Below the pieces are notes generated by a model that saw only the letters and a list, made by a program, of their open reading frames with translations, was not told where the DNA came from and made no database searches. From NCBI GenBank assembly GCA_964234715.1, contig OZ174290.1: DNA of 64,000 bases; one strand, written 5' to 3'. Made by a program: the position numbers and the translations under genes. The stretch is from Podarcis melisellensis (Eukaryota). The first letter of the stretch is position 1, and each line of letters starts with the position of its first letter. Below, in pieces: positions 5,298-64,000 of this stretch.

Positions 5298-6140
5298 AAT
5301 CATAGAATCATAGAGTTGGAAGTTCCCAAGGGTCATCTAGTCCAACGCTCTGCAATGCAGGAATCTCAGCTAAAGCATCCATGACAGATGGCCATCCAAC
5401 CTCTGCTTAAAAACCTCCAAGGAAGGAGAGTCCACCACCTCCCATGGGACCTGTTCCACTGCTGAACAGGTCTTACTGTCAGAAAGTTTTTTCAAATGTT
5501 TAGTTAGAATCTATTTTCTTGTAACTTGAAGCCATTGGTTCAAGTCCTCCCCTCCAGAGCAGGAGAAAACAAAATTGCTTCCTCTTCCATGTGACAGCCC
5601 TTAAGATATTTGAAGATGGCTATCATATGTTCTCTCAGGCTCCTCTTTTCCAGGCTAAACATACCCAGCTCCCTCAAGTACTCCTCATAAGGCTTAGTTT
5701 CTAGACCCTTTATCATCCTGGTTGCCCTCCTCTATGCATGTTCCAGCTTGTTAACAGTATTCCAGGTGTGGTGTGACCAAGGCAGAATAGAGTAGTGCTG
5801 TTACTTCCTTTGATCTGGACACTAGACTTCTGTTGATGCAGCCTAGAATAGTGTTAGCTTTTTTTTGCAGCTGTAGCACACTGTTGACTTATGTTAAGCT
5901 TGTGGTCCACTAAGACTCCTAGATCCTTTTCACATGTACTGCTAGTAAGCCAGGTGTCCCCCATCCTATATTTGTGCATCTGGTTCTTCCCGCCTAAGTG
6001 CAGAACCTTACATTTGCCCTATTGAAATTTGTTAGCTTGTGCCCAGTTCTCCAAGGTCATTTTGAATTCTGCTTCTGTCTTCTGCGGCATTAGCTACACC
6101 TCCCAGTTTGATGTCATCCTGCAAATTTGATGAGCCAGTC
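5298..6140 (-). mobile_element. CR1 LINE 3' fragment
   Basis: Reverse (ATTCTATG)n tail 'atcatagaatcatagagttggaag' plus typical CR1 RT 3' sequence. Confidence 0.85.
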
Positions 6141-6871
6141 TCTGTTCACAGACTTACAATCTAAAAGAAGGAAAAGAGGATGGGGAAAGAAGGAGAGAGA
6201 CACAAATTCAGGCACCAGCTGGGATGGAAACAGTTCAGAAAGCCTGATAGTATGGCTCTCATTGGGTGACAGTTGAGAGAGGACGAAAGCCAATTGATCT
6301 CTCTGCATAGGCAATGGAAATAACCTTGTTTCACTTATCTTCTTCTCTGCAAACAGGTATAAAATTGCAAGCAGGTGTACAGTTAATTCATATCAGGTTT
6401 ACTACAGAATATATTTGCTGTTACAAATTACAAGAGTCATTATCTCATGCTTATCTCTCTTAAACTGGTGAAAGGAATTACATGCTTTATACAGAGTCAG
6501 GCCACTGGTCTTTCGAGCTCAGTATTGTCTACAATGATTGACAGAGGTGCTCTAGCACTTCAGAAAGGATTTTTCTCAGGCCGCCCTGGAGATGCCTAGA
6601 ATTGAACCTGGAACCTTCTGCAGGCAGCACATGTTTTCTACCACTGAGCTATATAACCCAAAATACAGCTGATTATACATATCAAGCCAATTGTCTATCA
6701 TATTTTGGCAGAAACCAACCATAAACCTGAATTCTTGCATAAGTCAGCTTGTTTCCTGGCAGCATGGCAAGAGCAGTGAAGAAGTGAAGTGACTGTGATT
6801 TCAGCAGTGTGCACCTGTGCACTATGTGTTCACATTAAACACTAGTTTATTTTAACTACTGTATAGCTTTA

Positions 6872-7194
6872 GGGACGCGGGTGGCACAACTGGAAGGTCG
6901 GCAGTTTGAATCCCCGTGATGGGGTGAGCTCCCGTTGCTTGGTCCCTGCTCCTGCCCACCTAGCAGTTCGAAAGCGCATCAAAGTGCAAGTAGATAAATA
7001 GGTACCACTCCGGCGGGAAGGTAAATGGCGTTTCCATGCGCTGCTCTGGCTCGGCAGAAGCGGCTTAGTCATGCTGGCCACATGACCCGGAAGCTGTACG
7101 CCAGCTCCCTCGGCCAGTAAAGTGAGATGAGCGCCGCAACTTGTCGTCCGCAACTGGACCTAACGGTCAGGGGTCCCTTTATCTTTACCTACCT
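6872..7194 (+). mobile_element. Sauria SINE
   Basis: Same family; TSD TATAGCTTTA (6862-71 and 7195-204). Confidence 0.88.
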
Positions 7195-8049
7195 TATAGC
7201 TTTAATGTAATGTGTGAATGAGAAAGATGAGGATTGCTGAAGGGAGAGGCTAAGTTGCTTCCACGGCTAACTTTGAAACATAGCTGTGACACTATCGTGT
7301 CCCAAGGCTGAATTAAACAGTGGGGAACCAATGAAATTACTTGTTCGTAATCTTTAAGAGAGAAAAATTATATAAAAACTATGCATTAGTGCTGAGTTAC
7401 CCAGGACTTCAAAGCCTGTCAGTTTAGGATAATTAATTGGTTGATGTTCAGTTTTGGATAGGAAATAGAAAACCTGTTTGGGGTGCATATGTGTGTCCCA
7501 CATGGGAAAGATCCATATCTCTGTCACTTTTATATGCTGAATCTTTTATTGGTATTGAATCTCTATTGACAGCATTTTGTCATGTGTTTGTAAAGCCACC
7601 ATAGCAAATTCTTTTGAAATAGGCGTTGTAAATCCATTCAGTATGTAATTTAAGAAGGATGAGTATTTGATGTGATGAAATGTGATGCTTGCACTAGGAA
7701 TTTGAAATATTTGTTTAGCTATGTCTAGGGCTGCTGTCTTAAAAATATATATTTAAAAACTCTGATGATGGATTACAGGAATTTGTATCTGGTGCTTGGC
7801 ATTTGAAATTATTTTTTCCTGCCTTGAATATCCTCATGATGCATTTCGTACTTGTATTCAAAATATACTGCATGTTACGTTTCTTCAAACTCCATCTAGA
7901 TCTGAGCAATTTTCAGTATGGTCCTTAACTGATCATTCTCTCTCTTGTTGCCCAGGTTAGAGAAACCTTTGCTGAAATCCGATTATAAGATTTATTGGTC
8001 TTTGAAGGAACTCCCTTCTTAATGTTTGTGTGTTTCTGTCTCTCTCCAG

Positions 8050-8247
8050 CTGTCCCTTTCCCTCCTACGCAGCGGTTAACCCTGAAAGAAGTTTTTGAGG
8101 ATGGGAAACCCAGGCTGGAGGTCTTAAGAAACCACTTGGTGAAAGAAGGGCGTCTGGAGGAGGATGCAGCGCTGAAGATAATCAATGATGGAGCCTCCAT
8201 TCTGAGGCATGAGAAGACCATGATTGAAGTTGAGGCTCCAATCACAG
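8050..8247 (+). CDS. PPP3CC: Calcineurin A gamma, coding exon 2 ([11 protein letters not shown]...EAPIT)
   Basis: tctccag|CT acceptor, ACAG|gtcaga donor, 198 nt; translation matches the calcineurin A N-terminal catalytic region. Confidence 0.96.
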
Positions 8248-8546
8248 GTCAGAGAATGCTTTATTTTGTGGCTTGTTGTTTTCTGAGGCTCATCTGGAAT
8301 GACTGGCTGCTAAAGCCAGCAGGTTTCCTGTTGCATGTTCTTTCCACTGAAGTGTGCTCAAGATCAGAAAGCTTTCTATACCTCCAAGGGGAAGAAGTGT
8401 TTTTGTAGATTGGAGATTTGAGTACAGGAGTTCAGTATAATCCAACAATTTAGACTGAAGCAAAACCATGTTCCCTATTGGTTCTGTGACCTTTATCTTC
8501 TTAGCATGTAATCCTGTCCCTCTTTTTGCTGTCCTTCCTCCCCTAG

Positions 8547-8671
8547 TGTGTGGTGACATTCATGGGCAGTTCTTTGACCTGATGAAGTTGTTTGAAGTTG
8601 GAGGATCACCCAATAACACACGCTACCTCTTCCTGGGAGACTACGTGGACAGAGGCTACTTCAGTATAGAG
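8547..8671 (+). CDS. PPP3CC: PPP3CC exon 3 ([12 protein letters not shown]...[12 protein letters not shown])
   Basis: ccctag| and |gtgaca, 125 nt; PPP phosphatase GDIHG and GDYVDRG motifs. Confidence 0.97.
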
Positions 8672-11239
8672 GTGACAATTCAACTGAGCCTTTGGGGATT
8701 ACACTTTAAAGTTTGGGCTGAGCCTATGGAACCTTTTCTTCTTCCGCTTTGGTAGTTTATGCAGTCTAGTACAATTACAGAGAGTTAATATGCAACAAGG
8801 CTTATCTTTAAATCAGTACAAATTTATTTTTATGTTGGTCAGGAATCATGATGGCGAAGCGGCTAGATTGCAGTGCAGGACATTATGGGTTCAGGTCTGC
8901 CAAGCCTCATTCCAAATGCTACCATGTTCCTCCCCCTTCCCACAAATAAAAATAAATTATGATGCACAAGAGCAACTGACCTGTCAGTTTGCTAAGGACA
9001 AATAAAGTAGTCTGTGTTGAAACTTGTTGCTTTCTTTGCATGTTATTTCTATTAAAATATATAGGCCAATTTTCAACCAAAAGGTGTCCCAACTACAGAA
9101 TACAATAAAAATGATAAGCTGTAGACATCTGAATACCATTATGGACTGCTTCAGTTGTGTAAAAATGTGTGATAGCTAAACAAAATAAAAGTTTACCTCT
9201 TCTTTTCTCACCTGGACATCTTTATGAGCTCTAGTTGCCCTAATGCATCTTCAGGTTAATCTGGGCTTAAATACAGTTTATTAATATTTCACTGCCTAAA
9301 TGCTTCTGTGCTTTTTTGGGGTCCCACAGGCCAGACAACATATATTCAGAATTCATAGTTGACTCCAGTCTGCTAAAACAATCCTACAAAAATGGATAAT
9401 TAGCTAGGGAGGGGTGAGCAGAGGAGGAAACTCACTTATCATTCAGATGGAAATAATACTTCTGCTCTTACTACCAGCTGGCATTCTGAAGGGTTGTACA
9501 GGAATGGATCCTTAATTGCATTCAGACTGGCTCCTATTGGGTGGGAAATTGTGATAGCCAGGGAACTATGAGGGTGTCCTATTCAACAGAGGATCCCAAT
9601 GTGCCCAGATGCCTTGATCCACGTTTACAGTTTTTTAGCGTCATCTGAAGTCTGCTGTTTATCAGCTTGAATGCTGGGTCAGCTGTTCAGATGGCTGCTT
9701 GCCTTCTTTTAAAGTGGCATGTGTATGTTTGCTTTCATCCTTTGTGTTGTTCTTTTTTAAATTAAAGGGAAACATTTTTTAAAGTTGCAGAACTATTGGG
9801 AAGGAGTAGGGGGGGTCAGGTTAGTGAACTCCAGTAATGCTAGCCATATGACAGCATTTACAGCAAGTGTTTGCTGCAAGCTTGCAGAAACATTTTTTCC
9901 CTTCCAAAGCTTGGCCCAGAAGAGGAAAATACATGTTTTGTTTTAAATGTATTGAGGACGTTTCCAAACTCCCTCCCACTGCTCTACAATGATATCCCTC
10001 TTTTCACCTTAGCAATTGTGAGTGGTAAAATGAGTTAGGGGTATATTTGGGGTATTTGGTGATTGGAAAGAATTGGACTTGACCCTTAATTATTTTGGCT
10101 GCTAGCTTTCTGTTAAGTGGAGCCAGTGTGTGGCTACTACCATTGTGTGGGGTATTCCTGCCAGCTAGTATGATTAGTGGATGAGGAAATGTCTCCTACT
10201 AGTAAATGTTGCAGATCCCCTAAGTGGTTGTGATCTTTGGGTGAAATGAAGTTGGCAAGTACATGTAGGTCCCCCCCCCAAATGTTATAGTCTCTGCTGT
10301 GACACTTGAAAATTTCCAAAGGGGATACCACATGGCAGGGTTACATAGGCGTTGTTTCACAAAGGTAGAGGAATGGATTTCGGAAGCCATTTCAATTAAT
10401 GAAAGATGTAAAAGTGAAAGGGCACCAAATGGAACGGAATGGTCAGATCCAGAAAAACTGAGGAACTGGTGACAGTCTATGAAAGTCGCAGGAGAATGGA
10501 GTTTCAGTAATCCAGAGGAGGACGCAGTAAACTGTTTAACAAGGTAGCATAGTCACCTTTTCTGATTCCATCCAATGCTTTCTTTGTCACTTCTAGGGCT
10601 AGCCATGTTTGACTCTCACAGCAGAAATAGCAAAGTGTCTTGTGGGATTTTAATGCACAACTGGGATGGCAAAAGCTTTGTAGGCCCATGAAATCTGGTC
10701 CCTGAGTGTTTGATGGTACAATTAATTTGTTAGGCTGTAACCGTGCCACAAGACTCTGAGTTCTATGCATTCTGCATGAGGGAAACAGAGGATGAAGAAT
10801 TACAAGACATGATCACATGTTAAAGGCCGGGATTCTGAGCATGGACCTAGTGGACCACTGCTGTAGTGTTAATTCAGGAGTTATAGTGTGGAAAAATTGT
10901 GAGGGTAGAGAGGTTGCTACTTTCAGTTGTTAATAGGCTAATATTCATAATCTATCCCAACAACCTTTTGAGAAAGTTTCTCCTTTGTCGAGGAGGAATT
11001 CTGTGGAATCATGGCTCTGTTATGTTTTATGTTAATTTTTAGATTTCAGTTGCATAGTTTGAGCATTGAGAGAACAAGGATTAGCCTCCCTTGGCCACTT
11101 CTGCTATTGATACAGAGCACATCAATGAGCAAAGACAGCCACCTCCATGTGCCATCACTCAGAATAACAATTGGCAGCATCAAAGGGGGAGTACCAGCCC
11201 CCCACTTCCCATTTTGTATCATTTTAGTAATTACTTTAT

Positions 11240-18158: not shown

Positions 18159-21100
18159 TAGAGGGTCTGTTAAACTTGATAATCAGAACCCACCTATCTT
18201 TCGTTTACCATTACCCAAAAGTTGCCTGTACTCTTTATCTGCATTGGTGTCTGCATTCTAAGAGTTATGACAGAGAAGAAATATCTGTGGGTCATTGTTT
18301 GCAGCTATGTTTGATTCTAAAGAGATGTTGCTCAAGAGTTCCAGCAGCTTTTGTCCATTCCTTTACAAAATTGGGTTTTTACACCTTTACTTCCTAGATG
18401 TATAATAGAAGTGAACTTTTAAAGGAAGAAGTTTTTGGGTTTTGGTTATAAAATTAAGGAAAAAGAAAAGGAGACATCAGCTTTAAATCTGGTAACCTGA
18501 ATAGTCGCTGTTTGGGAATGGCAGTATCTAGTATCAATTCCATGCCACAAATCTTTAGAAAATCTGGATAAAGGATTTTTTTGCAGATCAGTAAGAACTG
18601 AATGTCACCCGCCTGTGAATGTCATTAAATCACTCTAGTTTTTCATCCCAGTCTCCTACCACAGATTGTCAAATTCTCCTTATTCCATGTTTTCCCTATC
18701 CTTTCCACCAACACATTTTCAGAGACTTGAGGAATCCTTTCAGAACAGAAACATCCCATGAGCTTGCTGATGTCACTGGAAACTTTGTTTCCAGATTTGA
18801 AGAATTTGTTTTTCGTATTTTGCTTATTTCCATAGAATCAAAGAATTGCAGAATTGGAAGAGATCCCAGGGGTCATCTAGTCCAACCCCCTACAGGAATT
18901 TTCTTACTCCCATTCTGTTAGTTTTGAATCAGTCAATGCAACAGAGGTGAAATTTAGTGGAAGGTAACACTCAAAACTATTTTTAAGATATTAACAGATT
19001 CTTACTAGATCATGAGCTTAATGCTCACTGACATGATCAACTTGCATATGGGTTGTGCCACTTCAGATTGAAAATGGGGGCAGACTTGGCTGAATGCTTC
19101 TCCTGCCCAGAAAAAGAAAAAACATTTAAAGCTAGACTAGAACTTTTCTCCCTGGCCTGCTGATTTTCTTTGTGGTTGAATTTGTGTATGCATGTGCACA
19201 TGCCTGTACATGGGTGTAGCAGTATTCAGTCATGCTAGTCCCCACCTGCAATCTAAAGTGTTACAGTCCAGACCCAGGTTGACCCTTAGTGAGACTTTTA
19301 TACTATTCTCATTTGAAAGGTCAGAGAAGCCCTGGCCTTGTGAGTCGTTCTCTGTCCATTCCATGGTGTTCATTGTCTTTCAGTCTGTACGTGACCTGAG
19401 AGCACTGCAAGTAGAGGAGAAGTGGGGGAAAGTATGAGAACTCTCTGGGTTTAAGAAGGTGGGAGAATAAAAACTCCAGTGGCAAGCTTGTTAAAAGTCT
19501 ATTTCACACTTGACTTTTTCAGATCCTTATTAATACTCATATCTTTATGTGTGCTGTATCTTTATATTGGAATAATAAATAATAATAATAATAAATTTTA
19601 TTTATATCCCGCCCTCCCCAGCCGAAGCCGGGCCCAGGGCGGCTAACAACAATAAAACAGGAACAGGAAATGGAACAAGTAAATGGAACAAGTAAAACAG
19701 ACACTTAATCTGTATTATACTCTTTGCCTGGTATGTGTATTGGAATGTGTATTGTTCAGTTGAAACCTATGAATGAATCTGCCTTATAGCCAGTTACCAC
19801 CAGGGGTGAGCGCCTGGGTGGGTTGGAGAATGGAGGTGAAAGAAGTTAAGTTGCTCAAAAGTCACAGACGGTTGACCCTGTGAGAGAGAGGGGGGCAGTG
19901 GGCAGCCCTAGATGTGAAATGGAGGAGGAGCTGTTGCTTGGACAAGCCTATGGTTCATTCCGTGGAAAGTTCCGTTTGTTTTTACCCAGATATTTATTGA
20001 AGTGGAAACTTTAATTGTTGTCCTCAGTGTACTTTAGCTTTGTTTGCTTTGTGATGGAGCTGTTAATTTTTTGTTGTTTATTGGACCTGTCTTTATGATG
20101 TTGTAATGTTTGTATATATATTTTCTGTACATCTTTTAGTATTCAATCTCCACTCTGGGATTGAAAATGCTCAATTAAGGGCAGGTTATAAATACTTTTA
20201 AAAAACCAGTTAGACTGTTGGTTCAACCAGTTCAGTATCGTTGACACTGATTGGCAGCCACTTACCAGGGCTACAGGCAGGGGATACTCCCAACTCCTCC
20301 TGGAGATGCTGTGGATTTAGCCTGAAATTTTGTGCATGCAAAGCAGGTGTTCTGCCACTGTTCTACAACCATTCTCCATGAATGAAAGAGATCTCTGGTT
20401 CTCTTAGTTTCCTCCTGGTGCTAAGGAAGGGGCTTATGGGGGTAGGGGCACATCTCCTGGAAATAAATCAAGAGTCTGCTTCTGCTTTGTTATGTTACCA
20501 ACCTGTACAAAAGGATGCATTTCTTATCCCTTCATGTGAGAACATGGCATGACTAATCTTATCCAGCACAAATTTTTTAAAGTGAGGGAAAGTCAGAACA
20601 GTACAGAACTTGAAAAATGTTTGAAAACATTCAGGTAGCTTCTACTGGAGGCTTTTATTTTTTTAGAGGTGGCCATCTCTGTGTTTGCATGGCTACTTTC
20701 CTGATTTCTAGTTTCACCTATTGTGCCTTGTTGATTCTGTTTGCCATACTACCACCATTCTATTTTGCTAAAATGTTCTTCAGAATAGCCCAGCTGAAAT
20801 TAACAGTGCCAAATTGAGAAGGTTGCTGCAAATTAAGCAAACTTGCAGGATTTAAGTGACCGTGAGCATTCTTTGTTTGTTTTTAAAAGTATGTGTTGGA
20901 TGTCCTCCCTGAAGCATGGATGCCACAGGTTAGCAGAGGCAGCAAGAGTTTGTGGCCTACCTGGGGGGGAGGATCGCTGGACTTGGCTTTGGCACAGTTA
21001 GATGTACAGTCCTGCTTGCCATTCCTGTGCTGCACTGCTGTGCCAACTTGGTGGCTCAGTGAATTAGGAGGACAGGCCACCCCAGGATATTGGAGGTGGG

Positions 21101-21623
21101 GACAAATCTGCATGGGCTGGAGCTAGAGGCAAAGCTGACTTAGGAGGACACTGTTATAGCTTGGTTGGCAGAACATTAGACTCTGAATCTCAGGGTCAGG
21201 GTTTCAAGCCTCACACTGGGCAAAATATTTGTGCATTGCAGGAGGTTGGGCCAGATGACCCTCGTGGTCCTTTCCAACTCTACAATACTGTGATTTTATG
21301 ATCTCTTGTTGGCACACTTGCCAAAAAAGGTGGCCATGCAGTTGGATATTGAAGGTCCTTGTTTCAGTCCCTGGTGTCTCCAGTTAGAAGGATCAGGTAG
21401 CCAGTGATATGAAGGACCTTTCTCTGAGACAAAGGTAAGTCTACCTGGCTAGATGGACAAAATGTCTGACCAGTATAAGGCAGCTTTCTATGTTTCCACT
21501 GTGAGCTCTTTGCAGCAGGACCTTGTGGAATCGAGCTCCTTGGGCTTATTTCCAGAAAGTTCCAAAGTGCAATTCTCTGCAAATGAATTTTCTAATATGC
21601 TACCTTCAATCACTCTCTTGTAG

Positions 21624-21773
<150 letters not shown>

Positions 21774-23130
21774 TAGGAAAAGCTATGGATGTTGGTGTGA
21801 AAGCATCCAGTATGTCCTTGCCCTCCTCTCCTTCAATATGCATGGAAGGGGAGTTTTAAATTCCACAGAGCAGAGAGGCTGTGAGCACTGTTCCTATGTC
21901 ACTGTCTCCCCAGCAGTCTGACTCCATGCAAGTTGTCCCTCCCACTCCCATCAATTTAGGGATCCAACATGCTGTAATTATAGCCAAGAGCTTTCAGTTC
22001 CAAATTGTGCAGCTGGAATCAGAGTTGGATGGAAATTGAGGGCTTTCCCTTTTTAACACAGATTGAGTGAAACCCAATCACCTCATGTAAGTGTGTGTGA
22101 AGTTAAATGGGCAGACCTTTGTTAGTTTTTTATAGACTGAATGGTGATGGTGCAAAGGGGAGACCTGGTCACTTTGCTTCTCAGTTTCAGAATGTCAGTG
22201 CTAAAAGTTAGTTTTTCTCCCTTCATTACAGTTCCTCTTCTCATTAAATATGTTGTGCTGGTTCTCTGACTGTCCGTATCAACTTCAAAGTCTGAGACTC
22301 TACATTTAAGGCCCTCATCCACCCACAACAGTATATCCTTTTTCTCTGTCATCCATTACTTGCCTTGTACCTCCTTATCACATTTGCCCTTTCTGCCTTG
22401 GAATACAAGTTCCCCTGTTTGAACTTCCCTGCTCCTTTTGGCTCCAGGCTTCCATCAGCTCCTGTCAAAGGAAAGAGGAAGGGGCAACTGGCAGACAGAT
22501 CAACAGCTGTTGTGTAGAACTTCTTGTTCATATTTCTTGTACTTGCTCTGTTCTCCCTTCTCTCTCCTAATACCATGCCACATCTGAGGTGCATGTTTGC
22601 TTTTAGCTTTTACCCAGTCCATGTACAGTTTGCCTTATTCCAGGAAAAGCTGGAAGTACAGTGGCCATATGTGCAAGAGAGCCTCATGTTTTGGAAGTAA
22701 TTGTAAAGATAGTCCATATTCTTATTTTAATCCTTCAGAAGCTTAATTTTCAAGAAGTAGTGCATTTTCTAAAAGGATGATGCCATAACCAAAAGATACA
22801 AGCCCAGGTATCTGGATTTGTATTGTCAATCACCATTATGCTTCTAGAGTATATACAAACTTTAATATATACATTATGCTGATTAGCCAGGTACTTTATG
22901 GGAAGAAATCTTTCTTTGTTTTGACAGCTGCCCTTGGCTTTAGTTGCCTTTCTGGGTCCTATAGTCTACAAAAGAGAGTAAACAACACTTTTAACACTAT
23001 TTATGATACCAATATATATTTCAAACAGTGAAAATCCAGACAAAAAAGTTGTTGAGCTTTTTTGGCAAATTCGCAAAAAAAGAGAGAAGCTTTTGAGCTA
23101 TCTTCAATCTCCAAAAAGGGCACTGCCAAC

Positions 23131-23247
23131 ATGGGTTGCCATATGTCTGGATTTTCCCGGACATTTTTGTGATTTCCACATGGACACAGCTTTCGACTAC
23201 AGTATTCCAGATGTGTTCAGGAATTTCCAGACGTATGGCAACCCTAC
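23131..23247. mobile_element. hAT (Tip100-like) MITE
   Basis: GGGTTGCCATATGTCTGGA / TCCAGACGTATGGCAACCC inverted repeats. Confidence 0.65.
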
Positions 23248-23401
23248 CAATATATTGATTTGTGTTATAAGAGCTGTAAGTTGAATAACTGGTGTCTGGA
23301 CTGACTTCAGTAAGTCACTTGGGAAGCCTCTGTGTCTAAATGTTTTAAATAAATTTGCAGTCTTTGCAAGGGCTGCTTTTCATGACAAATTTTAAAGATA
23401 C

Positions 23402-23855
23402 TGTCAGGGAACTGCCATCAGTGCCGGAGGAAGAGAGCAAAAGCCAGAGGGATTCCAGAGAGCGTCCAGGGATCGGGAGAGGCAGCCCATCTTCTGGGGA
23501 AGAGAATCAGCGTAGCACCAGTGGAGAGGGGGGCAGATGGGGGAAGCGGTGAGGCGGTCCCATGACTCCTTGCTGGGGACCAGCGGGGAGAGTAGGGGTC
23601 CTCCGCTGCCTACGCCCTCCTTGCGCAGAAGGCTTTCGCGCAGAGAGAGTAGGAGGAGACTAGGTGTCAAAGAGCTTTTTTGCTGGAAGAAGTTTAAAAA
23701 ACGCCCACTGACGGATTCTGCCAGCGATTGAGTCAGCCACGGGTGAGTGGCTGTCCGGACAGAAAAGGTTCACTTAGGCAACCCAGCCAGGTGTTTGCAC
23801 CCAGCCGGGGAGATAAGCACCGGCTTACGCACGAGCAACCCCTAGAACCATTACA
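23402..23855. mobile_element. Solo LTR (probably Gypsy-type)
   Basis: TGT...ACA termini, perfect 5-bp TSD GATAC (23397-401 and 23856-860). Confidence 0.8.
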
Positions 23856-24132
23856 GATACTAATTCACCTAATCAGTTGTATAAAGGTAATATGAGATGT
23901 ATAATACATATCTAACTTAGAGCAGGCCTAGAAAACCCTAACTACTTCCAGAGTCTTGCCATGTATAGTTGCTTTTTGCAGGAAAGCCTTGCTCAGGACA
24001 GTGGTTTTGAAATTGTTTCTTGGAAGCTCATCAGATGCTCCTCAGTGGGAGAATCAGTCCAGGTAAGCAGGTTTTCCTGGAAGATGGCTTGTCCCATCTT
24101 CTCCTGCAATGTGCAGAAGCAGGACTAGAGAG

Positions 24133-24256
24133 CATAGGAGCTAACACTTAGGGGTCAAGATCCCTTTGCCCACCCAGTAAAATGTTTGAGGGGGCCAGGC
24201 ACCCCCCCCCCAAGTTGATGGGCATTGCCATTCAAATGGTGTGTGTGTGCTGTATC

Positions 24257-24287
<31 letters not shown>

Positions 24288-24339
24288 ATGTGGGGCTTAC
24301 CTGCCCCCCCCAAATATTCTGTTCAAGTTGGTACCCGTG
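24133..24339. mobile_element. hAT-type MITE
   Basis: 8-bp TSD CTAGAGAG; imperfect TIRs CATAGGAGCTAAC / GTTGGTACCCGTG. Confidence 0.7.
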
Positions 24340-24750
24340 CTAGAGAGTACATTCTGTTGTTCACTCCCAGTTCGGAGTCCGAAATTTCCAGGACATACAG
24401 TTTTCTGTCTAGATATTCACTGTTTGAAATATAGCAACTCTATGGTGAAGCCTAGCCTAGATGGCTACAATTCTATGTGAACTACATGTACACCATAGAA
24501 CATGTCCAAGAATCTTCTGCAATGGACAAGGAGTCTACAGGCGATGTACTGCAGTTCCTTGGCAGACATGTTGGTGTGGAAAGTCTCTGAAGCAGGAAAG
24601 GAGGAAAAGTCCTGGCTTAGAGAGAGGAAGAGGCAAGGCAATTGTATTTCTTAAGTCCAGATGACTGGCAGTTTTCTGGGAGCCTTTTTATTTTTTATCT
24701 TTTATAGTTTGCATAAGTCCTTGCAGTTCTCTTGCTTCTGTTTCCTGCAG

Positions 24751-24896
24751 GTCGAATCAAGTACTCTGAGCGGGTGTACGATGCATGCATGGATACCTTT
24801 GACTGTCTTCCTCTTGCTGCCCTTTTGAACCAGCAGTTTCTGTGCGTGCATGGAGGGCTGTCTCCTGAAATCACATGTCTAGATGATATTAGGAAA
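24751..24896 (+). CDS. PPP3CC: PPP3CC exon 5 ([14 protein letters not shown]...[16 protein letters not shown])
   Basis: ctgcag| and |gtaagt, 146 nt; HGG motif. Confidence 0.97.
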
Positions 24897-25118
24897 GTAA
24901 GTGGTGCCTCTCCCCTCCATAAAACAGCACAGGTATCGTAGTTCCAGTCAGGGTCTTCTTGTAGGCTTACCTGCCCCCATTCTGACAAGGTTCCACTCCA
25001 GGGTATGTTTCCCCACCACCTTTTCTTTTAAGGCTACCTAAGACTTGTTGAAGGGGCTGCCAGGCATGAAGACATGTACACTTCTCTCTGATTCCAGGCT
25101 GAAGTTCTGTAGGGTTGA

Positions 25119-25430
25119 CAGTGGTGGAGGAAGGGGGTGGGTGGGGGCGGGCCACCCTGGGTGTCACCACTGAGGGGGTGACAAAATGCTGGGTGGCACT
25201 CACTGCGGGGCCTGCAGAATGCCCGAGCCACGCATCTCTCCTGGGAGAGATGCGGTGGCTTGGGCGCATGCAGGCTCTGCTCTGCCCAAACGGTCCGCCA
25301 GCTTCCCCCCCCCCAGCTGTAGGGTGGCTGAGTGGGAGGAGGCAGGCAGACTCTGGAGGCCCCATGGTGTGCCCCGCCCTGCCCCGTGGGCGGCTCACCC
25401 CAGGTGCCCGAGCGGCTTTTTCCGCCACTG
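25119..25430. mobile_element. GC-rich MITE
   Basis: TIRs CAGTGGTGGA / TCCGCCACTG, internal hairpin. Confidence 0.6.
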
Positions 25431-26357
25431 AGTCAAAAGAGGAAAGGTGCCAACAGGGAACTTGTGTGCGTTCGCGGCATTCGCCCTCCTTCCTGGCAAG
25501 CTGAGGCTTACTCTCTGGTTTTTTTTCCTCCATGCACCCTTTTTCATGCCCTGGTGAGATATATGCAGTTCTGTTATTTTCTGGTGTCTGCCTTATGTCC
25601 CGTCCCCGTCCCCCCTTCTATGTATAAAGCAAAGAAGGGTGTTACATAATGGGGAGATTCCTGAAGGTAGCAGAAGGAGACTTGCAGGGACTCGGGAAAG
25701 CAAAGTGCCAAGCCCTGGAGAAACAGTGAGGGAGGTGGTTTAATTTTCAGGATGAATTAAATAAAATTGCGGTCTTCGTAGAATTATATAATTGGAAGAG
25801 ACCCCGAGGGTCATTTAGTCCAACACTCTATTGTAGCCAGAATCCCAACTAAAGCATACACACTAATTCAATGTACTGATTTTGGGGGTGGGGGTGGGAA
25901 ATGATCACAATAAACATGAACAAACTTTAACAGTCACGGCCTTCTCGCCCTTATTATGCCCAAACCCCACTCCTTTGACAGTGTCTGTGAGCGTGACTTT
26001 CTCAGATGCTTGTGCATTTTAATTTATGCATTATATATGTCGTCTTTTATTAGCATGGTCAAGGCCAGAGGAGTGGGGGGGGCAGACCGCCCAGGGTGTC
26101 ATCGCTGAGGGGGGTGACATTCGGCATGACACACGCCATGACTCCCAAGCCTACCCCGAGCCATCGGTGGTGGTGGTCGGGGGTTTGACAAAAAAAAATG
26201 CACTTGGTACCACCTGACCTTGCTAGGCCTCTAAGGATTGAACTTCTTTGTGTATGCTGGTTTATGAACATCATAAAGATTTGGATTGGAACTTCTTTGT
26301 TCTCCTTCAAAGACAAATTAAGCAGTTGGAAAAAGAAATGTGTGTTGCCTTTAATCC

Positions 26358-44361: not shown

Positions 44362-45676
44362 CTGTATTTTTCACTCTATAACACGCACCTGACCATAACA
44401 CGCACATCGTTTTTAGAGGAGGAAAACAAGGGAAAAAACATTCTGAATGAAACAGTGGATGTATCAGTTTTGTGCTTCATGCTGTGGCCACAGACATGTG
44501 ATCTGATGGTGAATTTGGGGTGACCCAATGCAAAAATCCTGAGGATCCCTGTGGATCCATGCTTTGTAACCACGTTTTTGCACCATTGCAGCCCCAGGCA
44601 ACAGTGGGTGCGTGATTTTTTTGGTGCAGGCTGTAGCCATGGACATGCTATGTGATCTGATGGTGAATTTGGAGTGACCCAATGCAAAGATCGTGCTTTG
44701 TAACCACATTTTAAGTGGGGAGCTAAGGAAAAACAAAGAAGGGACATGAGAGGGGTGTGCAGAGAAGCAGCTGGCTAAGAATGCAGGAGAGGGATTTAAC
44801 GGGAGGGAGGAAAGAAAGGCAAAAGTTTCCCCCCACCCAAGCCAGCCATCTCTCTCTCTCTCCCTCCCCCCCTCTCTCTCTCCCTCCCCCCCTCTCTCCC
44901 CCCCCCACTCTCTCTCCCTCTCCCCCAGCAGTACCGGAGCACAGAGACACAGAGACGACCCTTTCCCCTCTGCTTGCCTGGAGGGGAGGAATGCAGGAGA
45001 GGGATTTAACAGGAGGGAGGAAAGAAAGNNNNNNNNNNNNNNNNNNNNNNNNNNNNNNNNNNNNNNNNNNNNNNNNNNNNNNNNNNNNNNNNNNNNNNNN
45101 NNNNNNNNNNNNNNNNNNNNNNNNNNNNNNNNNNNNNNNNNNNNNNNNNNNNNNNNNNNNNNNNNNNNNNNNNNNNNNNNNNNNNNNNNNNNNNNNNNNN
45201 NNNNNNNNNNNNNNNNNNNNNNNNNNNNNNNNNNNNNNNNNNNNNNNNNNNNNNNNNNNNNNNNNNNNNNNNNNNNNNNNNNNNNNNNNNNNNNNNNNNN
45301 NNNNNNNNNNNNNNNNNNNNNNNNNNNNNNNNNNNNNNNNNNNNNNNNNNNNNNNNNNNNNNNNCCCCAGCAGTACGGAGCACAGAGAGGACACTTTCCC
45401 CTCTGCTTGCCTGGAGGGGAGGGGCTTTCCCTGCTCTTTGTTCCGTTTCAGCAAACACAGCAACGAAACAGAGTGGGTGGGCAGTAAGACCCTGAGGCAG
45501 AATGCAGGAAAGCAGCCACTTCCTCTTTTCAGGTTTCCCTTCTCCGTGAAACGCGATTTGATTTTTGCCTGATTTTTCTGCTCCAGGGACCACACACTCG
45601 CTCTATAACATGCACAGACATTTCCCCTTCCTTTTTAGGAGAAAAAAATCTGCTTGTTATAGAGGGAAAAATACGG
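44362..45676. mobile_element. Tc2-like non-autonomous DNA transposon with internal tandem repeats
   Basis: TA-CTGTATTTTT ... AAAAATACGG-TA; spans the assembly gap. Confidence 0.75.
45029..45364. other. Assembly gap (336 N)
   Basis: N run within a tandem-repeated unit. Confidence 1.
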
Positions 45677-57947: not shown

Positions 57948-58227
57948 AACAGCAATTTCTATTTTTCAACCTGACCAACAAACCAAAAAGAAAACCTTTG
58001 GCCCAAAGGATATGGCAAGTTTTCAGTGCTTCCTTGCGTCATCTCTTTAGGTGTGCAAACTCAAAGGGAACTAATGTGGTTTATTTAACCCCTTAATCCA
58101 ACTCACATCTGCACCCTACATTTAAAGCACCCTGATACCACTTTAACAGTCATGGCATCTCCCCAAAGGATCCTGGGAAATGTAGTTTGTTAAGGGTGCT
58201 GGAAATTGCAGCTCTGTGAGAGGAGGG

Positions 58228-58555
58228 TGTTGGTTTCTGCTTTCTTCTCTGTGCAGCGAAGTGCTTGTCACAAGACAATGTTTACATTCCACAGGATGTA
58301 CTGTTGGAGGTTTTCCCACGGGAACGGGAGACTGGATGTGACGTACACTGGTTTCCTGTTTTTCACTGTTCTTTGCAGTTTCAGTTGTGATTCTCTCCGT
58401 GCTTTAGAGGAGAGATGACGCTTTCTCTGCTCCGGCAGAGGGAAAATGTTTTTCTGTAACTTACCAGCTTTGAACTGTAAATAAAGTAGTATAGAGCATG
58501 TTGGCTCATACTTTTCATCATTCCGCTGTGCACTGGACACTGCTTATCTCCAACA
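58228..58555 (+). repeat. 5' LTR (328 bp)
   Basis: TGTTGG...CCAACA inverted termini; contains AATAAA; 1 mismatch to the 3' LTR. Confidence 0.97.
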
Positions 58556-58558
58556 TAT

Positions 58559-58572
58559 GGTTTCGGGCCCAG
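58559..58572 (+). promoter_or_regulatory. Primer-binding site, half-tRNA(iMet) type
   Basis: GGTTTCGGGCCCAG, 12/14 match to GGTTATGGGCCCAG (complement of the tRNA-iMet anticodon arm, as used by Drosophila copia). Confidence 0.75.
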
Positions 58573-59024
58573 AAAAACGCAAAGCATCGGAACAGCGGCA
58601 GAGAGACGGAACGCACGGTATCTGCTCTGCGCGTCAAGATGATTGATGAAGGTATGTGATACTGCTCCGGGCAGCCTGCAAGCTTCTAATTAATGGCTTT
58701 AAGGCTGGACTTTGAACTTTTAAAGCCGTTTTCCACGGCACAAGCGTAGTGGCTTGGATGGCTGGGAAAGTGAAAGTAACTTTTACAAATGCTGCAGTTT
58801 CAAAGCAGCTGCAGACATGACGCAGCAAGAATTAAAGGGCAGTAGAGAAAGCACTTGAGAACTTTCGCTATTGAACTTGCCTTTTGGAATGCAGTTTGAA
58901 GCAGCTGCAGATAAGAAGAGCGGCACATGCTCATAGGCAGAGGCTGTTTTGATTTTGCTTTTGGATTGAAGCAGCTGTACACAAACGCAGCTTGTATAAA
59001 GCAGCTTGATTTAAAGCAGCATAG

Positions 59025-62000
59025 ATGACGCAAGAGGCAAATGCCAGAGTCATGATGGCTAGCTGCAGAAGGCTGGACAAGGAAAGTGGGGAATTTGATA
59101 CCACTGATCAGCCAAATGCTCAACTCACAGTAGCTTGTGATACTGCCATGATTCAGAATGAAGCGGATCGCCGCGGTGCTAGCTGCATCAACAAGGGGGA
59201 GACTTCACAGTCGTCATCCCATAGTGCAGTGGAACCACCAGATGGCGCCAAAGCTTTGAAGGCAGTGAAATGCTACTCGTGTGGACGTCTAGGCCATATG
59301 AAGAGGGAATGCAAATATCCCAGGGCCAAGACAGAGCAGCGCAGTGGAAGCTCATTGCGTGGAAAAGGCCAGAGCAAAGGCAAAGGTCCGGTGTCCAGGA
59401 CAACGCAGCACAAGGCAATGGTCTCACGCTACGCTCCAAAGGTTGCAGAGGTTGCAGAGGTCCAGAAGACGTCTAGATCTTTCTTCGTTGTTGATTCAGC
59501 GGCGACGCATCACATGTGCAACGATAAGAGACTGTTCGTGTCTTTTACACCGCAGGAAGGTGCAATTCACCAGGCGGATGACCACACTATCCCCAGTAAA
59601 GGCTACGGAACTGTTGTTCTTCACAGTTTGGACTTATCGATACAGGATGTTCTTTACGTGCCGGATGCGAAACATAATCTGCTCAGCGTTGGACAGCTGA
59701 TTGAGAAGAAGATTGACGTTTCCTTTAAAAACAATAGATGCATCATCACCAAGAAAAATGATTATCAATTGTATGCTGAATTTGTTGATCGTTTGTTTCT
59801 TTTGTATTATGATGATGTTGTGCAAGATGACACTTGTTGCATTGCAGGTTCTAACAAAAGTTTGCATGCAGAATGTATTCACGATTTTCATCGAAAATTT
59901 GGTCATTTGCATTTTGAGGCAGTATCTAAAATGCCTGCCTTGGTTGAAGGTATGACTATTAAACCCTGCAGGTACCACATGAAGTGCAAGGCATGCGCAG
60001 CAAACAAGGTGAAAATGGCTGCGAAAGGTAAGGTGTCTAGTAGGCAAGCTACAGAACCATACCAAATTATTCATGCTGATTTGGTTGGACCACTAGCGCC
60101 CTCTTTGGGTGGAAATAGGTACTTCATGGTTCTCATTGATGCATTTTCCAGATATATTTATGTGTACAATCTCAAGCAGAAATCAGAGGCTTTTCCTAGG
60201 TTCAAGGAATTCTGTGCTTGGTTAGGAAATGTGCATGGTAAGAAGATAAAGATTCTTTTCACTGACCGGGGGGGAGAATTCACTTCTCAGCAGTTTGAAG
60301 CTTTTCTGGCTGAGAAAGGAATTCAACACGATTTGTCTAGTCCTCGCTCGCCATGGCAGAATGGACTTGCGGAACGAGCAAATCAGACATTGCTTCAAGG
60401 GTTAAAGACCTTGCTGCATGATGCAAATCTTCCAGAGAGTTATTGGGCCGAAGCTCTCTCATGTTTCACTTACAGTTATAATCGCAGGTTATCTTCAGCG
60501 ATTGGTTGTACCCCCTATGAGAAGATGTTTGGCAAGAAGCCATACATCAAACACATGAAAATTTTTGGTTCTGACATGTGGGTTCACTCACCACAACACT
60601 CCAAGTTAGACAAGCGTGGTTTGCATGGTATCTTTCTAGGTTATCAGAAAGGGTCTTACAGAATAATGATGACTGACTCTAAGGAAATTAAGCTCACAAG
60701 AAGTGTTGAGTACAATGCCAAGTGGGGGGAGAATGTGGGAATTTTTCAATGTTATCCTGATGACAGTGATGAGACTGAGGATAGTCAAAAGCAACCGCAA
60801 CAACCCACACCCACTGATGAAGGTTCTGATTCTGAGTCTGAAACTGAATCGGGTGATTCAGAGGATTTCAAGAGTGCGAAAGCCTCTATGCGACCCTCTG
60901 AAAGCTCTGATCAAGAATTGGAGGAACCATTGTTCACAATAGGTCGTTTTTCTCCTAAGAAGGAAGAGGAGAGTGTTGAAGACTTAAGGCTAATTCGCAG
61001 GTCACAGAGAGCCACAAAAGGTAGACCTCCAAAGAGATTTGCTGATGAGTTTGCTAACATAGCAGTAACAGCTGTTAAAAGCTCCAAGAAGGTTTTTGAA
61101 CCTTCAAGTTTCCAAGAAATCCAGGATTTGGATTCAAAGGAAGCTGAGCCATGGTTAAATGCCATGAAGGCTGAGCTTGATTCCTTGGAAAGGAACAAAA
61201 CATGGGACCTAGTTCCAGTAGTTCCAGGAATGAAATTGCTTGGAAGCAAATGGGTCTTCAAAGCGAAGACTGATCAAAATGGCAAGATAGTCAGACACAA
61301 AGCCAGGTTGGTAGCCAGAGGTTTTGCACAGGTACCAGGTGAAGACTATCACGAGACCTACTCACCCACAGTGAGGTATGAGAGCATTAGGCTTATGCTC
61401 AAGCTAGCTGCAGAGGAAAATCTACACATTAGTCACCATGATGTGAATACAGCTTTTCTGTACGGATCTCTAGGTGAATCACTTTATATGCTTCCACCTG
61501 ATGGCATACAGGTAAAACAGGGATTTGTTTGTGCTCTGAAAAAGTCAATTTATGGTCTCAAACAAAGTGCACGGTGTTGGCACACAAAACTCACTGAAGT
61601 ATTGTATTCTCTAGGTTTTCAGCAAGGGAAATCTGATCCATGTGTATTTGTCAAAGAGGAGGGGCAAAAGAAACTGTATTGTTTGTTTTATGTTGATGAT
61701 CTTTTATTCGTTTGGAAGGATGTCACAATGTACAATAACGCCCTAGCTCAACTGAAAGAGCACTTTGACATGAAAGATCTTGGTGAGGTAAACAACTACC
61801 TATCTCTGGAAATAGAGAGAGATCAAGATGGTAACATTCTAGTACACCAGTCACGGAAAATTGCTGATGTGTTAAGCAAACTAAACCTGATGGATGCTAA
61901 CCCTGTGGATACACCGATGATAACAGGTTATCAGGTAGATGACACTGAAGAAGCATTTTCTGACACTACACTGTACAGAAGTGTGCTAGGCAAGCTAAAC

Positions 62001-62630
62001 TTCATAGCCAGATGTTCAAGACCAGACATTGCTGTTAGCTGTAATGTGCTAAGCAGACAAGTCAACAATCCTACTGTTAAGGATTGGAAAGCTCTGAAAC
62101 GCATAGCGCGGTATTTGAAAGGCACTATGCATTACAGACTGAGATTTAACAATCAGAAGTCTGGTGGTCTTGAGATATTTGCAGATGCAAGTTTTGGAAG
62201 TGACACTACAGACAGGAAAAGTACGTCTGGAGTTTGCTATAAGTACAATCAGGGTCTATTTGATTGGTCATGCAAGAAGCAAACAACAGTTAGCTTAAGT
62301 ACTTGTGAAGCTGAACTGAATGCACTGTCTCATTCACTTAAAGATTGTGAATGGTTGTTACAATTGTGCAAAGACATGAAAATTCCTGTCAAATGTCCAA
62401 TCCAGGTTTACCAGGACAACAAAGCATGTTTGGCTTTGCTGAATTCTGAAGGTTGTAAGCAAAGCACGAAGCACTTGCAATTGAAGTTGCAACATGCTAG
62501 GGAACGTATTCAGAAGGGACTCGTAACGGTGTCCTATATGCCAGGTAATGAAATTCCTGCTGATGTATTGTCCAAGATTGTATCAAGGGATCAACACTGT
62601 ACCTATGTGCAGAAGTTGGGTTTGTACTGA
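59025..62630 (+). CDS. Copia polyprotein: zinc knuckle, protease, integrase, RT, RNase H (1201 aa, no capsid domain evident)
   Basis: CYSCGRLGHMKREC; VVDSAAT; HRKFGH..CKAC; HADLVGP/TDRGGEF/NGLAER (DDE); DVNTAFL/YVDD; FADAS/EAE/QDN/PADVLSK. Confidence 0.95.
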   Translation: MTQEANARVMMASCRRLDKESGEFDTTDQPNAQLTVACDTAMIQNEADRRGASCINKGETSQSSSHSAVEPPDGAKALKAVKCYSCGRLGHMKRECKYPRAKTEQRSGSSLRGKGQSKGKGPVSRTTQHKAMVSRYAPKVAEVAEVQKTSRSFFVVDSAATHHMCNDKRLFVSFTPQEGAIHQADDHTIPSKGYGTVVLHSLDLSIQDVLYVPDAKHNLLSVGQLIEKKIDVSFKNNRCIITKKNDYQLYAEFVDRLFLLYYDDVVQDDTCCIAGSNKSLHAECIHDFHRKFGHLHFEAVSKMPALVEGMTIKPCRYHMKCKACAANKVKMAAKGKVSSRQATEPYQIIHADLVGPLAPSLGGNRYFMVLIDAFSRYIYVYNLKQKSEAFPRFKEFCAWLGNVHGKKIKILFTDRGGEFTSQQFEAFLAEKGIQHDLSSPRSPWQNGLAERANQTLLQGLKTLLHDANLPESYWAEALSCFTYSYNRRLSSAIGCTPYEKMFGKKPYIKHMKIFGSDMWVHSPQHSKLDKRGLHGIFLGYQKGSYRIMMTDSKEIKLTRSVEYNAKWGENVGIFQCYPDDSDETEDSQKQPQQPTPTDEGSDSESETESGDSEDFKSAKASMRPSESSDQELEEPLFTIGRFSPKKEEESVEDLRLIRRSQRATKGRPPKRFADEFANIAVTAVKSSKKVFEPSSFQEIQDLDSKEAEPWLNAMKAELDSLERNKTWDLVPVVPGMKLLGSKWVFKAKTDQNGKIVRHKARLVARGFAQVPGEDYHETYSPTVRYESIRLMLKLAAEENLHISHHDVNTAFLYGSLGESLYMLPPDGIQVKQGFVCALKKSIYGLKQSARCWHTKLTEVLYSLGFQQGKSDPCVFVKEEGQKKLYCLFYVDDLLFVWKDVTMYNNALAQLKEHFDMKDLGEVNNYLSLEIERDQDGNILVHQSRKIADVLSKLNLMDANPVDTPMITGYQVDDTEEAFSDTTLYRSVLGKLNFIARCSRPDIAVSCNVLSRQVNNPTVKDWKALKRIARYLKGTMHYRLRFNNQKSGGLEIFADASFGSDTTDRKSTSGVCYKYNQGLFDWSCKKQTTVSLSTCEAELNALSHSLKDCEWLLQLCKDMKIPVKCPIQVYQDNKACLALLNSEGCKQSTKHLQLKLQHARERIQKGLVTVSYMPGNEIPADVLSKIVSRDQHCTYVQKLGLY

Positions 62631-62675
62631 TATTGTACGAACACGCTGCCCAGAGGTTCACAGAAAGGGGGAGGA

Positions 62676-63003
62676 TGTTGGTTTCTGCTTTCTTCTCTGT
62701 GCAGCGAAGTGCTTGTCACAAGACAATGTTTACATTCCACAGGATGTACTGTTGGAGGTTTTCCCACGGGAACGGGAGACTGGATGTGACGAACACTGGT
62801 TTCCTGTTTTTCACTGTTCTTTGCAGTTTCAGTTGTGATTCTCTCCGTGCTTTAGAGGAGAGATGACGCTTTCTCTGCTCCGGCAGAGGGAAAATGTTTT
62901 TCTGTAACTTACCAGCTTTGAACTGTAAATAAAGTAGTATAGAGCATGTTGGCTCATACTTTTCATCATTCCGCTGTGCACTGGACACTGCTTATCTCCA
63001 ACA
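62676..63003 (+). repeat. 3' LTR (328 bp)
   Basis: Direct repeat of 58228-58555, preceded by the polypurine tract AGAAAGGGGGAGGA. Confidence 0.97.
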
Positions 63004-64000
63004 GAGGGGTCTCTAACTACTCTCAGCATTCTGTCCAAAGGGGGACAAGCCTTGCTTAAGGAGGTGGTGGCAGTTGGGGAGCCTGGGGCCACAGAGGCCG
63101 TGCCAGCAGGAGGGCGTTGGGCCAGCAGCATTTTATCCTTTGGACCGTCGGCCAGAATTGGGAGGAAGTAATGCTCCAGAAGCTTTCTTCTCGTGATGAG
63201 CATGCGCACAAAGGTGGTGGCTGCATTTGTAACAAAGAGCAGCAAAGTTGCCCCTGGCGGTGGTGACTCTCACAGTTCACCATCTCCTTAGGCTCCCTTC
63301 CATGCAGGCAACGGTTCAGCAAGCAGACTGGCAGCATGAGAGTGTGGTGCAAGACACCAGATTTCACAGCATGCTTAGACAGGTCCCAGATGGGCAAAAG
63401 GGGCATTCCCCTCAGGTGTGCTCAGGAGCCCTTTTAAAAAGAAATATGGCGGGGGGGGGGGACTCCGCAGGTGCCCAAAGGCACTAGAATGTTCATGGGC
63501 AAAAGAAGACAAGAGAACAGGGACGAGGCTGCGTGCAGGCTGCCTTCTCTTTCCTCTGGCCTGGTTACAGAGATCAGCTTTGTTCTTCAACCTGTTCTGT
63601 CTAGTTCCCAAACCTGCTGTGGGCTTTTCAGCTAAAAGGTTAAGCAAACACTCCTGGCAGCTTCTTTTGTTGGCCTAGATCACTGCCAGGCAGCCTTCTC
63701 ATCTTACCCTTGCCGTTTTGCTTCCTTTCTCTTCCAAGAACTGTTTGTTTCCTTCCCTTCCACCTTCCACCTTGCCCCCCCCCAACCTCTAAAGGTCGAC
63801 CCTCCAGTACAAACACCTTCATGGCTAAAAGGGAGCCAGTCCCTATTTGCTCTTCCATTTCACTTTCCCCTGTATCTTTTGCACAGGAAATGCAAGCCTG
63901 CCCAGGGCCTTGGCACCCCCCCCCCCAAATGGTCTCTGCTCTTGCTCAAAATTGCCATGAGCGGGGCCTGGCAGAATGGAGGGAAGCCTGACTGTCATTG

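Follow-up and report, generated by a model that had tools for sequence, protein, structure and literature searches.

An intact Pol reading frame without a capsid

We analyzed a stretch of 64,000 nucleotides (nt) from Podarcis melisellensis (GenBank assembly GCA_964234715.1, contig OZ174290.1), hereafter the window, which carries at 58228-63003 a Ty1/copia retrotransposon with an intact Pol and no capsid; all of its features are given here on the + strand. The element is flanked by a perfect 5-bp target-site duplication (TSD), GAGGG, found directly outside both long terminal repeats (LTRs) at 58223-58227 and 63004-63008. The LTRs (58228-58555 and 62676-63003) are each 328 nt long, run from TG to CA and, when aligned to each other, differ at a single position (58344 T vs. 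62792 A; 0.3%), which together with the perfect TSD indicates that the insertion is young. A primer binding site (PBS)-like 15-mer, TGGTTTCGGGCCCAG, lies two bases past the 5' LTR (58558-58572), and a polypurine tract (PPT), AGAAAGGGGGAGGA, adjoins the 3' LTR (62662-62675), so that all of the LTR hallmarks of Ty1/copia elements are present.

Between the LTRs lies a single open reading frame (ORF) of 1201 amino acids (aa; 59025-62630), which by ORF call and Pfam encodes a capsid-deleted Gag fused to protease (PR), integrase (IN), reverse transcriptase (RT), and RNase H. Its ATG directly follows an in-frame TAG, and an in-frame TGA stands five codons upstream. Pfam detected zf-CCHC, Pol_BBD (aa 154-229), rve (aa 343-443), SH3_retrovirus (aa 502-564), and RVT_2 (aa 724-966), with IN ahead of RT in the order expected of copia, and gave no match to the capsid domain Retrotran_gag_2 anywhere in the 1201 aa. 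The CCHC zinc knuckle of the nucleocapsid (NC) at 59271-59312 (PF00098, aa 82-97, 25.7 bits vs. a cut-off of 20.8) has only 82 aa ahead of it. PR follows at 59484-59711 (PF22936, E = 1.9e-20), with the active-site motif D-S-A rather than D-S-G at 59493-59501, and IN at 59793-60716, where the HHCC zinc-binding, DDE core, and SH3-like parts (PF13976, PF00665, PF25597) keep H289, H294, C321, C324, D352, D414, and E450. RT occupies 61194-61922 (PF07727, E = 6e-70), with YVDD read from the sequence at 61689-61700. The RNase H region (62172-62579) has no separate Pfam match, as is common for copia, and keeps the conserved columns D1054, E1095/E1097, D1131, and D1180. Catalytic columns were read from a MAFFT alignment of 40 polyproteins.

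These results agree with the first-pass annotation, made from the sequence without database searches, in the ORF start directly after a TAG, the 82 aa before the knuckle, the perfect TSD with LTRs one nt apart, and the intact catalytic residues (the PR Asp, IN HHCC and DDE, RT YVDD, and the acidic residues of RNase H). An exact look-up of the ORF returned no existing record; its aa identity is 58% to the relative P0001 and 63-66% to copies in Podarcis muralis.

A capsid fold within the first 82 aa, named at the outset as a finding that would overturn the absence of capsid, was likewise not detected: Pfam gave no match there even at E = 10, and AlphaFold2 predicted aa 2-77 with a per-residue confidence (pLDDT) below 50, which is weak evidence given an alignment of only 5 rows. 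The CCHC knuckle was the sole confidently predicted stretch within aa 1-150 of the structure model.

The capsid deletion and the untranslated leader

To place the missing sequence we compared the window with L012, a copy in Podarcis lilfordi (locus 20505-25490) that lies inside the spliced gene model P0124 and was recovered by an exhaustive protein search with the first 150 aa of the window ORF as query. L012 is 93.5% identical in nt to window positions 59109-62989, its LTRs are ~85% identical to those of the window, and it encodes a capsid domain (Retrotran_gag_2 positions 30-168 of 172, E = 3.8e-27). The gag of L012 starts at 21127 with MTLKANARVMMA; the window counterpart, MTQEANARVMMA, comprises the start and first 12 codons of the ORF (59025-59060), and the first 32 nt match at 28 positions. 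In the second copy of the deleted form, L002 (below), the ORF begins MTQKANAKVMMA. The gag start and leader shared with L012 indicate that the window ORF begins at the authentic gag start codon.

From this ATG to the motif QP(T/N)AQLT the distance is 514 nt in L012 vs. 84 nt in the window, a difference of 430 nt, or ~143 codons of capsid coding. The heptamer TCATGAT occurs twice in L012, at 21152 and 21582, with a spacing of 430 nt that equals the missing length, and once in the window, at 59050-59056, the probable deletion joint. The deletion thus probably falls between two direct repeats, and template switching during reverse transcription could have produced it. L012 carries its own one-base frameshift inside the capsid-coding stretch; that the deletion is in frame follows from the window ORF, which is open directly, the 430-nt figure being in the coordinates of a frameshifted copy.

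Beyond the joint, homology to L012 resumes at 59109. The 52 nt at 59057-59108 (aa 12-28), which are common to L002, match L012 at only 15 of 52 positions, no better than chance, vs. 28/32 upstream and 39/52 downstream; we searched for another source of these 52 nt and found none. Either the progenitor differed there or the joint was remodelled. The LD-ES encoded in this segment is similar to SLDESY in P0001 and P0002, two distant relatives. From 59109 to 59174 the window encodes a retained capsid tail, QPNAQLTVACDTAMIQNEADRR, which matches P0001 residues 180-248 by BLASTP (E = 7e-14), aligns to QPTAQLTVDFVTAVILNEADRR of L012, and covers roughly the final 25 of the 172 positions in the Retrotran_gag_2 profile. 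The closest full-length relatives, including P0001 (ENA contig) and P0002, have the capsid domain and ~230 residues before the knuckle, and their homology to the window begins only at 59112. A match of aa 2-29 to P0001 residues 146-178, suggested by MAFFT, was rejected: BLASTP did not support it, and L012 identifies aa 1-12 as the gag N terminus. Taken together, the alignments show a single clean deletion inside gag, in frame, that took out nearly the whole capsid domain (its first five-sixths) and spared the authentic gag start, the knuckle, and the complete PR-IN-RT-RNase H. We class the element as a deletion derivative of copia, lacking the capsid that L012, P0001, and P0002 possess.

The 5' untranslated leader (58573-59024; 452 nt) had been read in the first-pass annotation as decayed gag, with stop-interrupted remnants such as RVKMIDEGM. 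We rejected this reading. Neither Pfam on each stop-free leader piece nor gag hidden Markov models built here and run against the six-frame leader translation (no filters, X at stops) gave a match, tblastn with the gag of relatives found nothing upstream of 59112, and the portion 58573-58837 aligns to the L012 leader upstream of its gag ATG. RVKMIDEGM sits in this shared portion, the leader is by homology a true 5' untranslated region, and the sum by which ~150 leader codons plus 82 aa would restore the usual ~230 aa is a coincidence. The claim that the leader has no long + strand ORF stood, none exceeding 44 aa between PBS and ATG. No frame of the whole element contains capsid-coding sequence, which also disposes of a spliced or frameshifted transcript that would restore capsid. 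By reading the sequence, joins of the donor-like site at 58653 (below) to AG sites just before the ATG gave a stop or the wrong frame.

The leader has features of its own. Ten upstream ATGs, nine in the leader and the tenth (58557) in the LTR-PBS spacer, all open short ORFs, and the predicted RNA fold has z = -2.7. A block at 58630-58735 is 89% identical to L012, vs. 63-69% in the flanking leader, and contains a splice-donor-like GGTATGTG (58651-58658). Its GGTA[TC]G motif recurs in the leaders of all five related elements examined (L001, L004, the two P. muralis elements L003 A and L003 B, and L012), while leaders of different families are barely alignable apart from this G|GTA(T/C)G. The motif would define an exon-intron boundary at 58652/58653, past which seven of the 10 upstream ATGs fall, the one at 58654 overlapping the motif. 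Such a site might mark a leader intron or act as a retrovirus-like major splice donor, and the block as a whole is a candidate cis signal (packaging or splice donor) shared with L012.

Further downstream, the leader has an expansion particular to this subfamily, built of degenerate repeats (58838-59000; families D2, D4, and D9) that are absent from L012 and partly present in L002. AAGCAGC occurs at 58803, 58899, 58969, 58999, and 59014, the first and last just outside the expansion, giving five on the + strand in 220 nt (58803-59020) vs. 22 elsewhere in the 64 kb, both strands counted; three of the five sit in (A/G)AGCAGCTG, which contains an E-box-like CAGCTG. Scans of JGI metagenomes and prokaryotic genomes with leader and PBS patterns returned nothing or chance bacterial matches without copia coding.

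The PBS also varies among relatives. We compared window positions 58558-58572 with 5769-5782 of L003 and ~500-511 of L001. The core GGTTTCGGGCCCAG is found in the window and at the equivalent place in both P. muralis elements, and differs from the PBS of L012, TGGTTATGGGCCCAG (~20824-20838; core GGTTATGGGCCCAG), at two bases, both at the anticodon positions. The L012 sequence presumably pairs with initiator tRNA-Met at its anticodon arm, in the manner of the half-tRNA primer of Drosophila copia. The half-tRNA is mentioned in PMC5371799. In L001, a more distant relative, the PBS is of the classic 3'-end type, TGGTAGCAGAGG. The sequence abutting the 3' LTR is GAAAGGGGGAGGA in P. muralis element A and GAAAAGGGGGAGGA in the outer element, B. 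No matches came from Rfam and tRNA scans of the 64-kb window.

Descent of the deletion and constraint on Pol

To decide whether the deletion belongs to this copy or to a lineage, we turned to L002, a 1080-nt Logan contig from an independent sequencing run (ERR14657708; protein P0121). It is ~91% identical to the window in nt (synonymous divergence, dS, 0.16). Its ATG, the in-frame TGA that stands five codons before it, the junction peptide, and no less than 124 nt of leader are the same as in the window. The split between the two copies far exceeds the 0.3% divergence of the window LTRs; the deletion therefore predates the window insertion, and its presence in both implies that it has been copied at least twice. 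As the first-pass annotation had proposed, the capsid was lost before this copy inserted, and the deletion is a lineage trait rather than private damage. L012, with its full capsid domain, places this deletion-derived subfamily next to gag-bearing kin. The sample comprises two deleted copies and one frameshifted, gag-bearing copy (L012); word searches for more siblings with the first 200 and 102 aa found only L002.

The same comparison bears on the PR motif. A G-to-A change private to the window was considered as a lesion and rejected: L012/P0124 carries the same D-S-A, while L002 and P0001 have D-S-G, and the alignment indicates that D-S-A is a family trait. L002 carries a 29-nt deletion in its PR.

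The check on Pol proposed at the outset, the ratio of non-synonymous to synonymous divergence (dN/dS), indicated purifying selection, with a value of 0.21 for the window vs. L012 (1165 codons, dS 0.13) and similar values in every domain. Changes on each branch were then polarized with L012 as outgroup over the 850 nt common to the window, L002, and L012. Synonymous and non-synonymous changes number 14 and 19 on the window branch and nine each on that of L002, vs. a neutral expectation of ~3.6 non-synonymous per synonymous change; the synonymous excess on both branches combined has P = 0.0001 to 0.016, depending on the neutral expectation assumed. These counts indicate that coding constraint on Pol persisted after the deletion, a pattern that recombination with helper RNA would also give.

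Proposed supply of capsid in trans

Based on these results, we consider it probable that the window holds a full-length copy of a capsid-deleted, non-autonomous lacertid copia subfamily that is supplied with capsid in trans. Without a capsid the element could not build its own virus-like particle, and the RNA of the lineage would be packaged in particles made by the Gag of a gag-bearing relative, for which the leader block shared with L012 could serve as a common packaging signal. The lineage would still make and use its own NC-PR-IN-RT polyprotein, as suggested by a deletion that is in frame and keeps the start codon and by the constraint on Pol. In this it would be comparable to mouse IAP I-delta-1, with a gag-pol fusion acting in cis, and to barley BARE-2, with its conserved pol. 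Dependence on capsid in trans is the most economical reading because the defect belongs to a lineage and Pol is under selection. The first-pass annotation had similarly proposed a lineage that borrows capsid, and that part is retained; the family as a whole is not Pol-only, since L012 has a capsid, and we found no evidence for the Gag-only partner of a cooperative pair.

Several observations weigh against this proposal. A polyprotein without capsid has no obvious way into the particle of a helper, and Pol would then be expected to decay; its entry is the weakest link of the mechanism. A helper in the element's own genome is hypothetical; the one gag-bearing sibling found, L012, comes from P. 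lilfordi and is broken by four frameshifts. Just two deleted copies are known, of which L002 spans 1080 nt. Past the joint, 52 nt have no relation to L012, which leaves the deletion event or its progenitor only partly accounted for. Finally, repeated recombination with helper RNA packaged in the same particle is another possible source of the constraint on Pol, and synonymous divergence from L012 declines along the ORF, being 0.22 at its 5' end and 0.09 at its 3' end, next to LTRs that are ~15% diverged.

The last point leads to an alternative in which a helper supplies both Gag and Pol, and the element's own Pol ORF is kept by recombination with that helper or simply by youth. The absence of a known route into the particle for a capsid-less polyprotein would be explained, the divergence gradient and the LTRs that are more diverged than the adjacent coding sequence fit it, and the jump at 59109, where identity goes from 15/52 to 39/52, is a mosaic of the sort that recombination leaves. 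On the other hand, the synonymous excess is seen on both post-deletion branches, and the deletion is in frame and spares the start codon, features of no consequence unless the ORF behind it is translated. Moreover, the fusion protein of the mouse IAP I-delta-1 element can act in cis (PMC6466679). We regard complete dependence of this kind as rather unlikely.

A second alternative holds that there is no deleted lineage, the deletion having arisen in the one reverse transcription that made this insertion, by a template switch at TCATGAT inside an autonomous parent's particle. Template switching by RT typically produces deletions of this kind, between short direct repeats, the repeat spacing fits exactly, and with two deleted copies the record is thin. 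The same junction, start codon, and leader in L002, at ~9% nt divergence vs. 0.3% between the LTRs, largely refute such a dead-on-arrival origin, to which we assign a very small probability.

It is still less probable that the element is self-sufficient, either because the 82-aa Gag stub and the knuckle are enough or because the clade needs no conventional capsid. This idea draws on L003, a nested pair of copia elements in P. muralis (OZ076972.1, 4932-14988), the copies with 63-66% aa identity noted above. Element A of L003 has LTRs (5377-5763 and 10096-10482) identical at 387 of 387 positions, the TSD CTGCT, and a 1366-aa ORF (6001-10101), and is inserted in the leader of element B, whose LTRs are identical at 374 of 377. 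Of Retrotran_gag_2, both retain only positions 1-88 of 172, and the CCHC cysteines are gone; their homology resumes at PAQSLT, the same boundary where the window deletion ends. The L003 elements are a second, independent, and young capsid-truncated family, and an intact ORF between identical 387-nt LTRs, in a family without half of the capsid and without the knuckle, would suggest that capsid loss is tolerated repeatedly in the clade. Against self-sufficiency, aa 2-77 of the window ORF are predicted to be disordered (from a shallow alignment), and reverse transcription in Ty1/copia elements takes place inside particles built of Gag. The capsid domain is also well conserved in close relatives, an indication that some part of the system requires it. 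Ty1 itself produces a Gag without the N-terminal part, p22/p18, which restricts Ty1; p22 keeps the capsid C-terminal domain and inhibits, whereas the lizard stub lacks almost the whole capsid, is fused to Pol, and shows no sign of a restriction role.

An assembly artefact or damage private to the window copy can be dismissed with near certainty: nothing was found in its favor, the same structure occurs in the independent run behind L002, the element contains no N runs, and the ORF is open across the joint.

With trans-supplied capsid as the preferred reading, the element resembles the BARE-2 and Tos17 type of plant copia in combining the absence of capsid with intact LTRs, PBS, PPT, and pol ORF, in a defect common to more than one copy (n = 2), and in transposition after the defect arose. 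BARE-2 of barley is said to retain gag sequence yet be unable to express it; in the lizard element the capsid coding is physically deleted, in frame and with start codon and knuckle kept, the host is a lizard, and the helper is only inferred here. Like the lizard subfamily, BARE-2 is a copia subfamily that is unable to make Gag and has kept pol; it lives beside close gag-competent kin, BARE-1, whose capsid it uses (Tanskanen et al. 2007, 'Life without GAG', as cited in PMC4350172). In rice, the copia element Tos17/RN304 has LTRs, PBS, PPT, and an open pol, with neither a gag domain nor gag remnants in the leader, and Tos17 transposes, presumably with the Gag of its relative Lullaby (PMC3977881). 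Tos17 has no CCHC knuckle, and its Pfam table holds gag_pre-integrase, rve, and RVT_2 but no protease (PMC3977881), whereas the lizard element keeps knuckle, protease, and the original gag start; gag-bearing kin stand at 93.5% nt identity for the lizard element (L012) vs. 57% DNA identity for Tos17 (Lullaby).

Vertebrate precedents come from endogenous retroviruses (ERVs). Mouse IAP I-delta-1, a class II ERV, has a fusion ORF created by an in-frame deletion and depends on proteins that full-length relatives supply in trans, yet no other subtype has been as successful; the fusion protein itself works in cis. ETn/MusD is a further ERV precedent (PMC6466679). Both IAP I-delta-1 and the lizard element are non-autonomous vertebrate LTR elements with an in-frame internal deletion; the IAP is Retroviridae-like and lost part of gag and part of pol, while the lizard element lost capsid only. 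A literature search, which was incomplete, found no paper describing a gag-deleted copia in vertebrates. The initial remark that no vertebrate case had been described therefore holds for the copia superfamily as far as we found, and not beyond it, given the ERV precedents. The biology is not new in kind; the lizard element differs from these systems in being a copia of a vertebrate and in a deletion that keeps knuckle, protease, and start codon.

Among amniotes, copia elements flourish in squamates alone, and according to a 2025 survey most copia copies of metazoans are found there, every one belonging to the Mtanga clade, with only RT/RNase H classified (PMC11889832). Judging from that survey, the window element would belong to Mtanga, and its closest named relatives are in Podarcis lizards. 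The gag structure of squamate copia is not described in the literature searched. The element would add a vertebrate copia example to the helper-parasite pairs of plants (BARE-1/BARE-2, Tos17) and of mouse ERVs (IAP I-delta-1, ETn/MusD).

There are consequences for annotation as well. Such copies pass as 'intact' in pipelines based on LTR age and ORFs though they are non-autonomous, and gene predictors turn their siblings into spurious spliced genes. The models P0061 (P. muralis LOC144324910) and P0124 (P. lilfordi) join copia pieces to unrelated exons over 16-26 kb, P0124 including the untranslated leader, and are annotation artefacts, not host genes. Elsewhere in the window, ORFs of 190-290 aa without Pfam match are open in several frames on both strands at 44723-45595, probably in low-complexity or repeat sequence.

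A broader and more tentative proposal, which we think possible but on balance doubtful, is that in-frame loss of one or another portion of the capsid has recurred among lacertid copia subfamilies while Pol stayed under selection, the two cases at hand being the window lineage (first five-sixths lost) and the P. muralis family (second half and knuckle lost). These subfamilies would spread as Pol-proficient parasites of gag-bearing kin, their capsid-less Pol polyprotein still reaching the particle. The NC-Pol or Pol polyprotein might do so by binding its own RNA in cis. If true, this would be the first such partnership in the copia superfamily described for a vertebrate, and it would provide a natural setting in which to study the entry of Pol into particles when capsid-capsid contacts are lacking.

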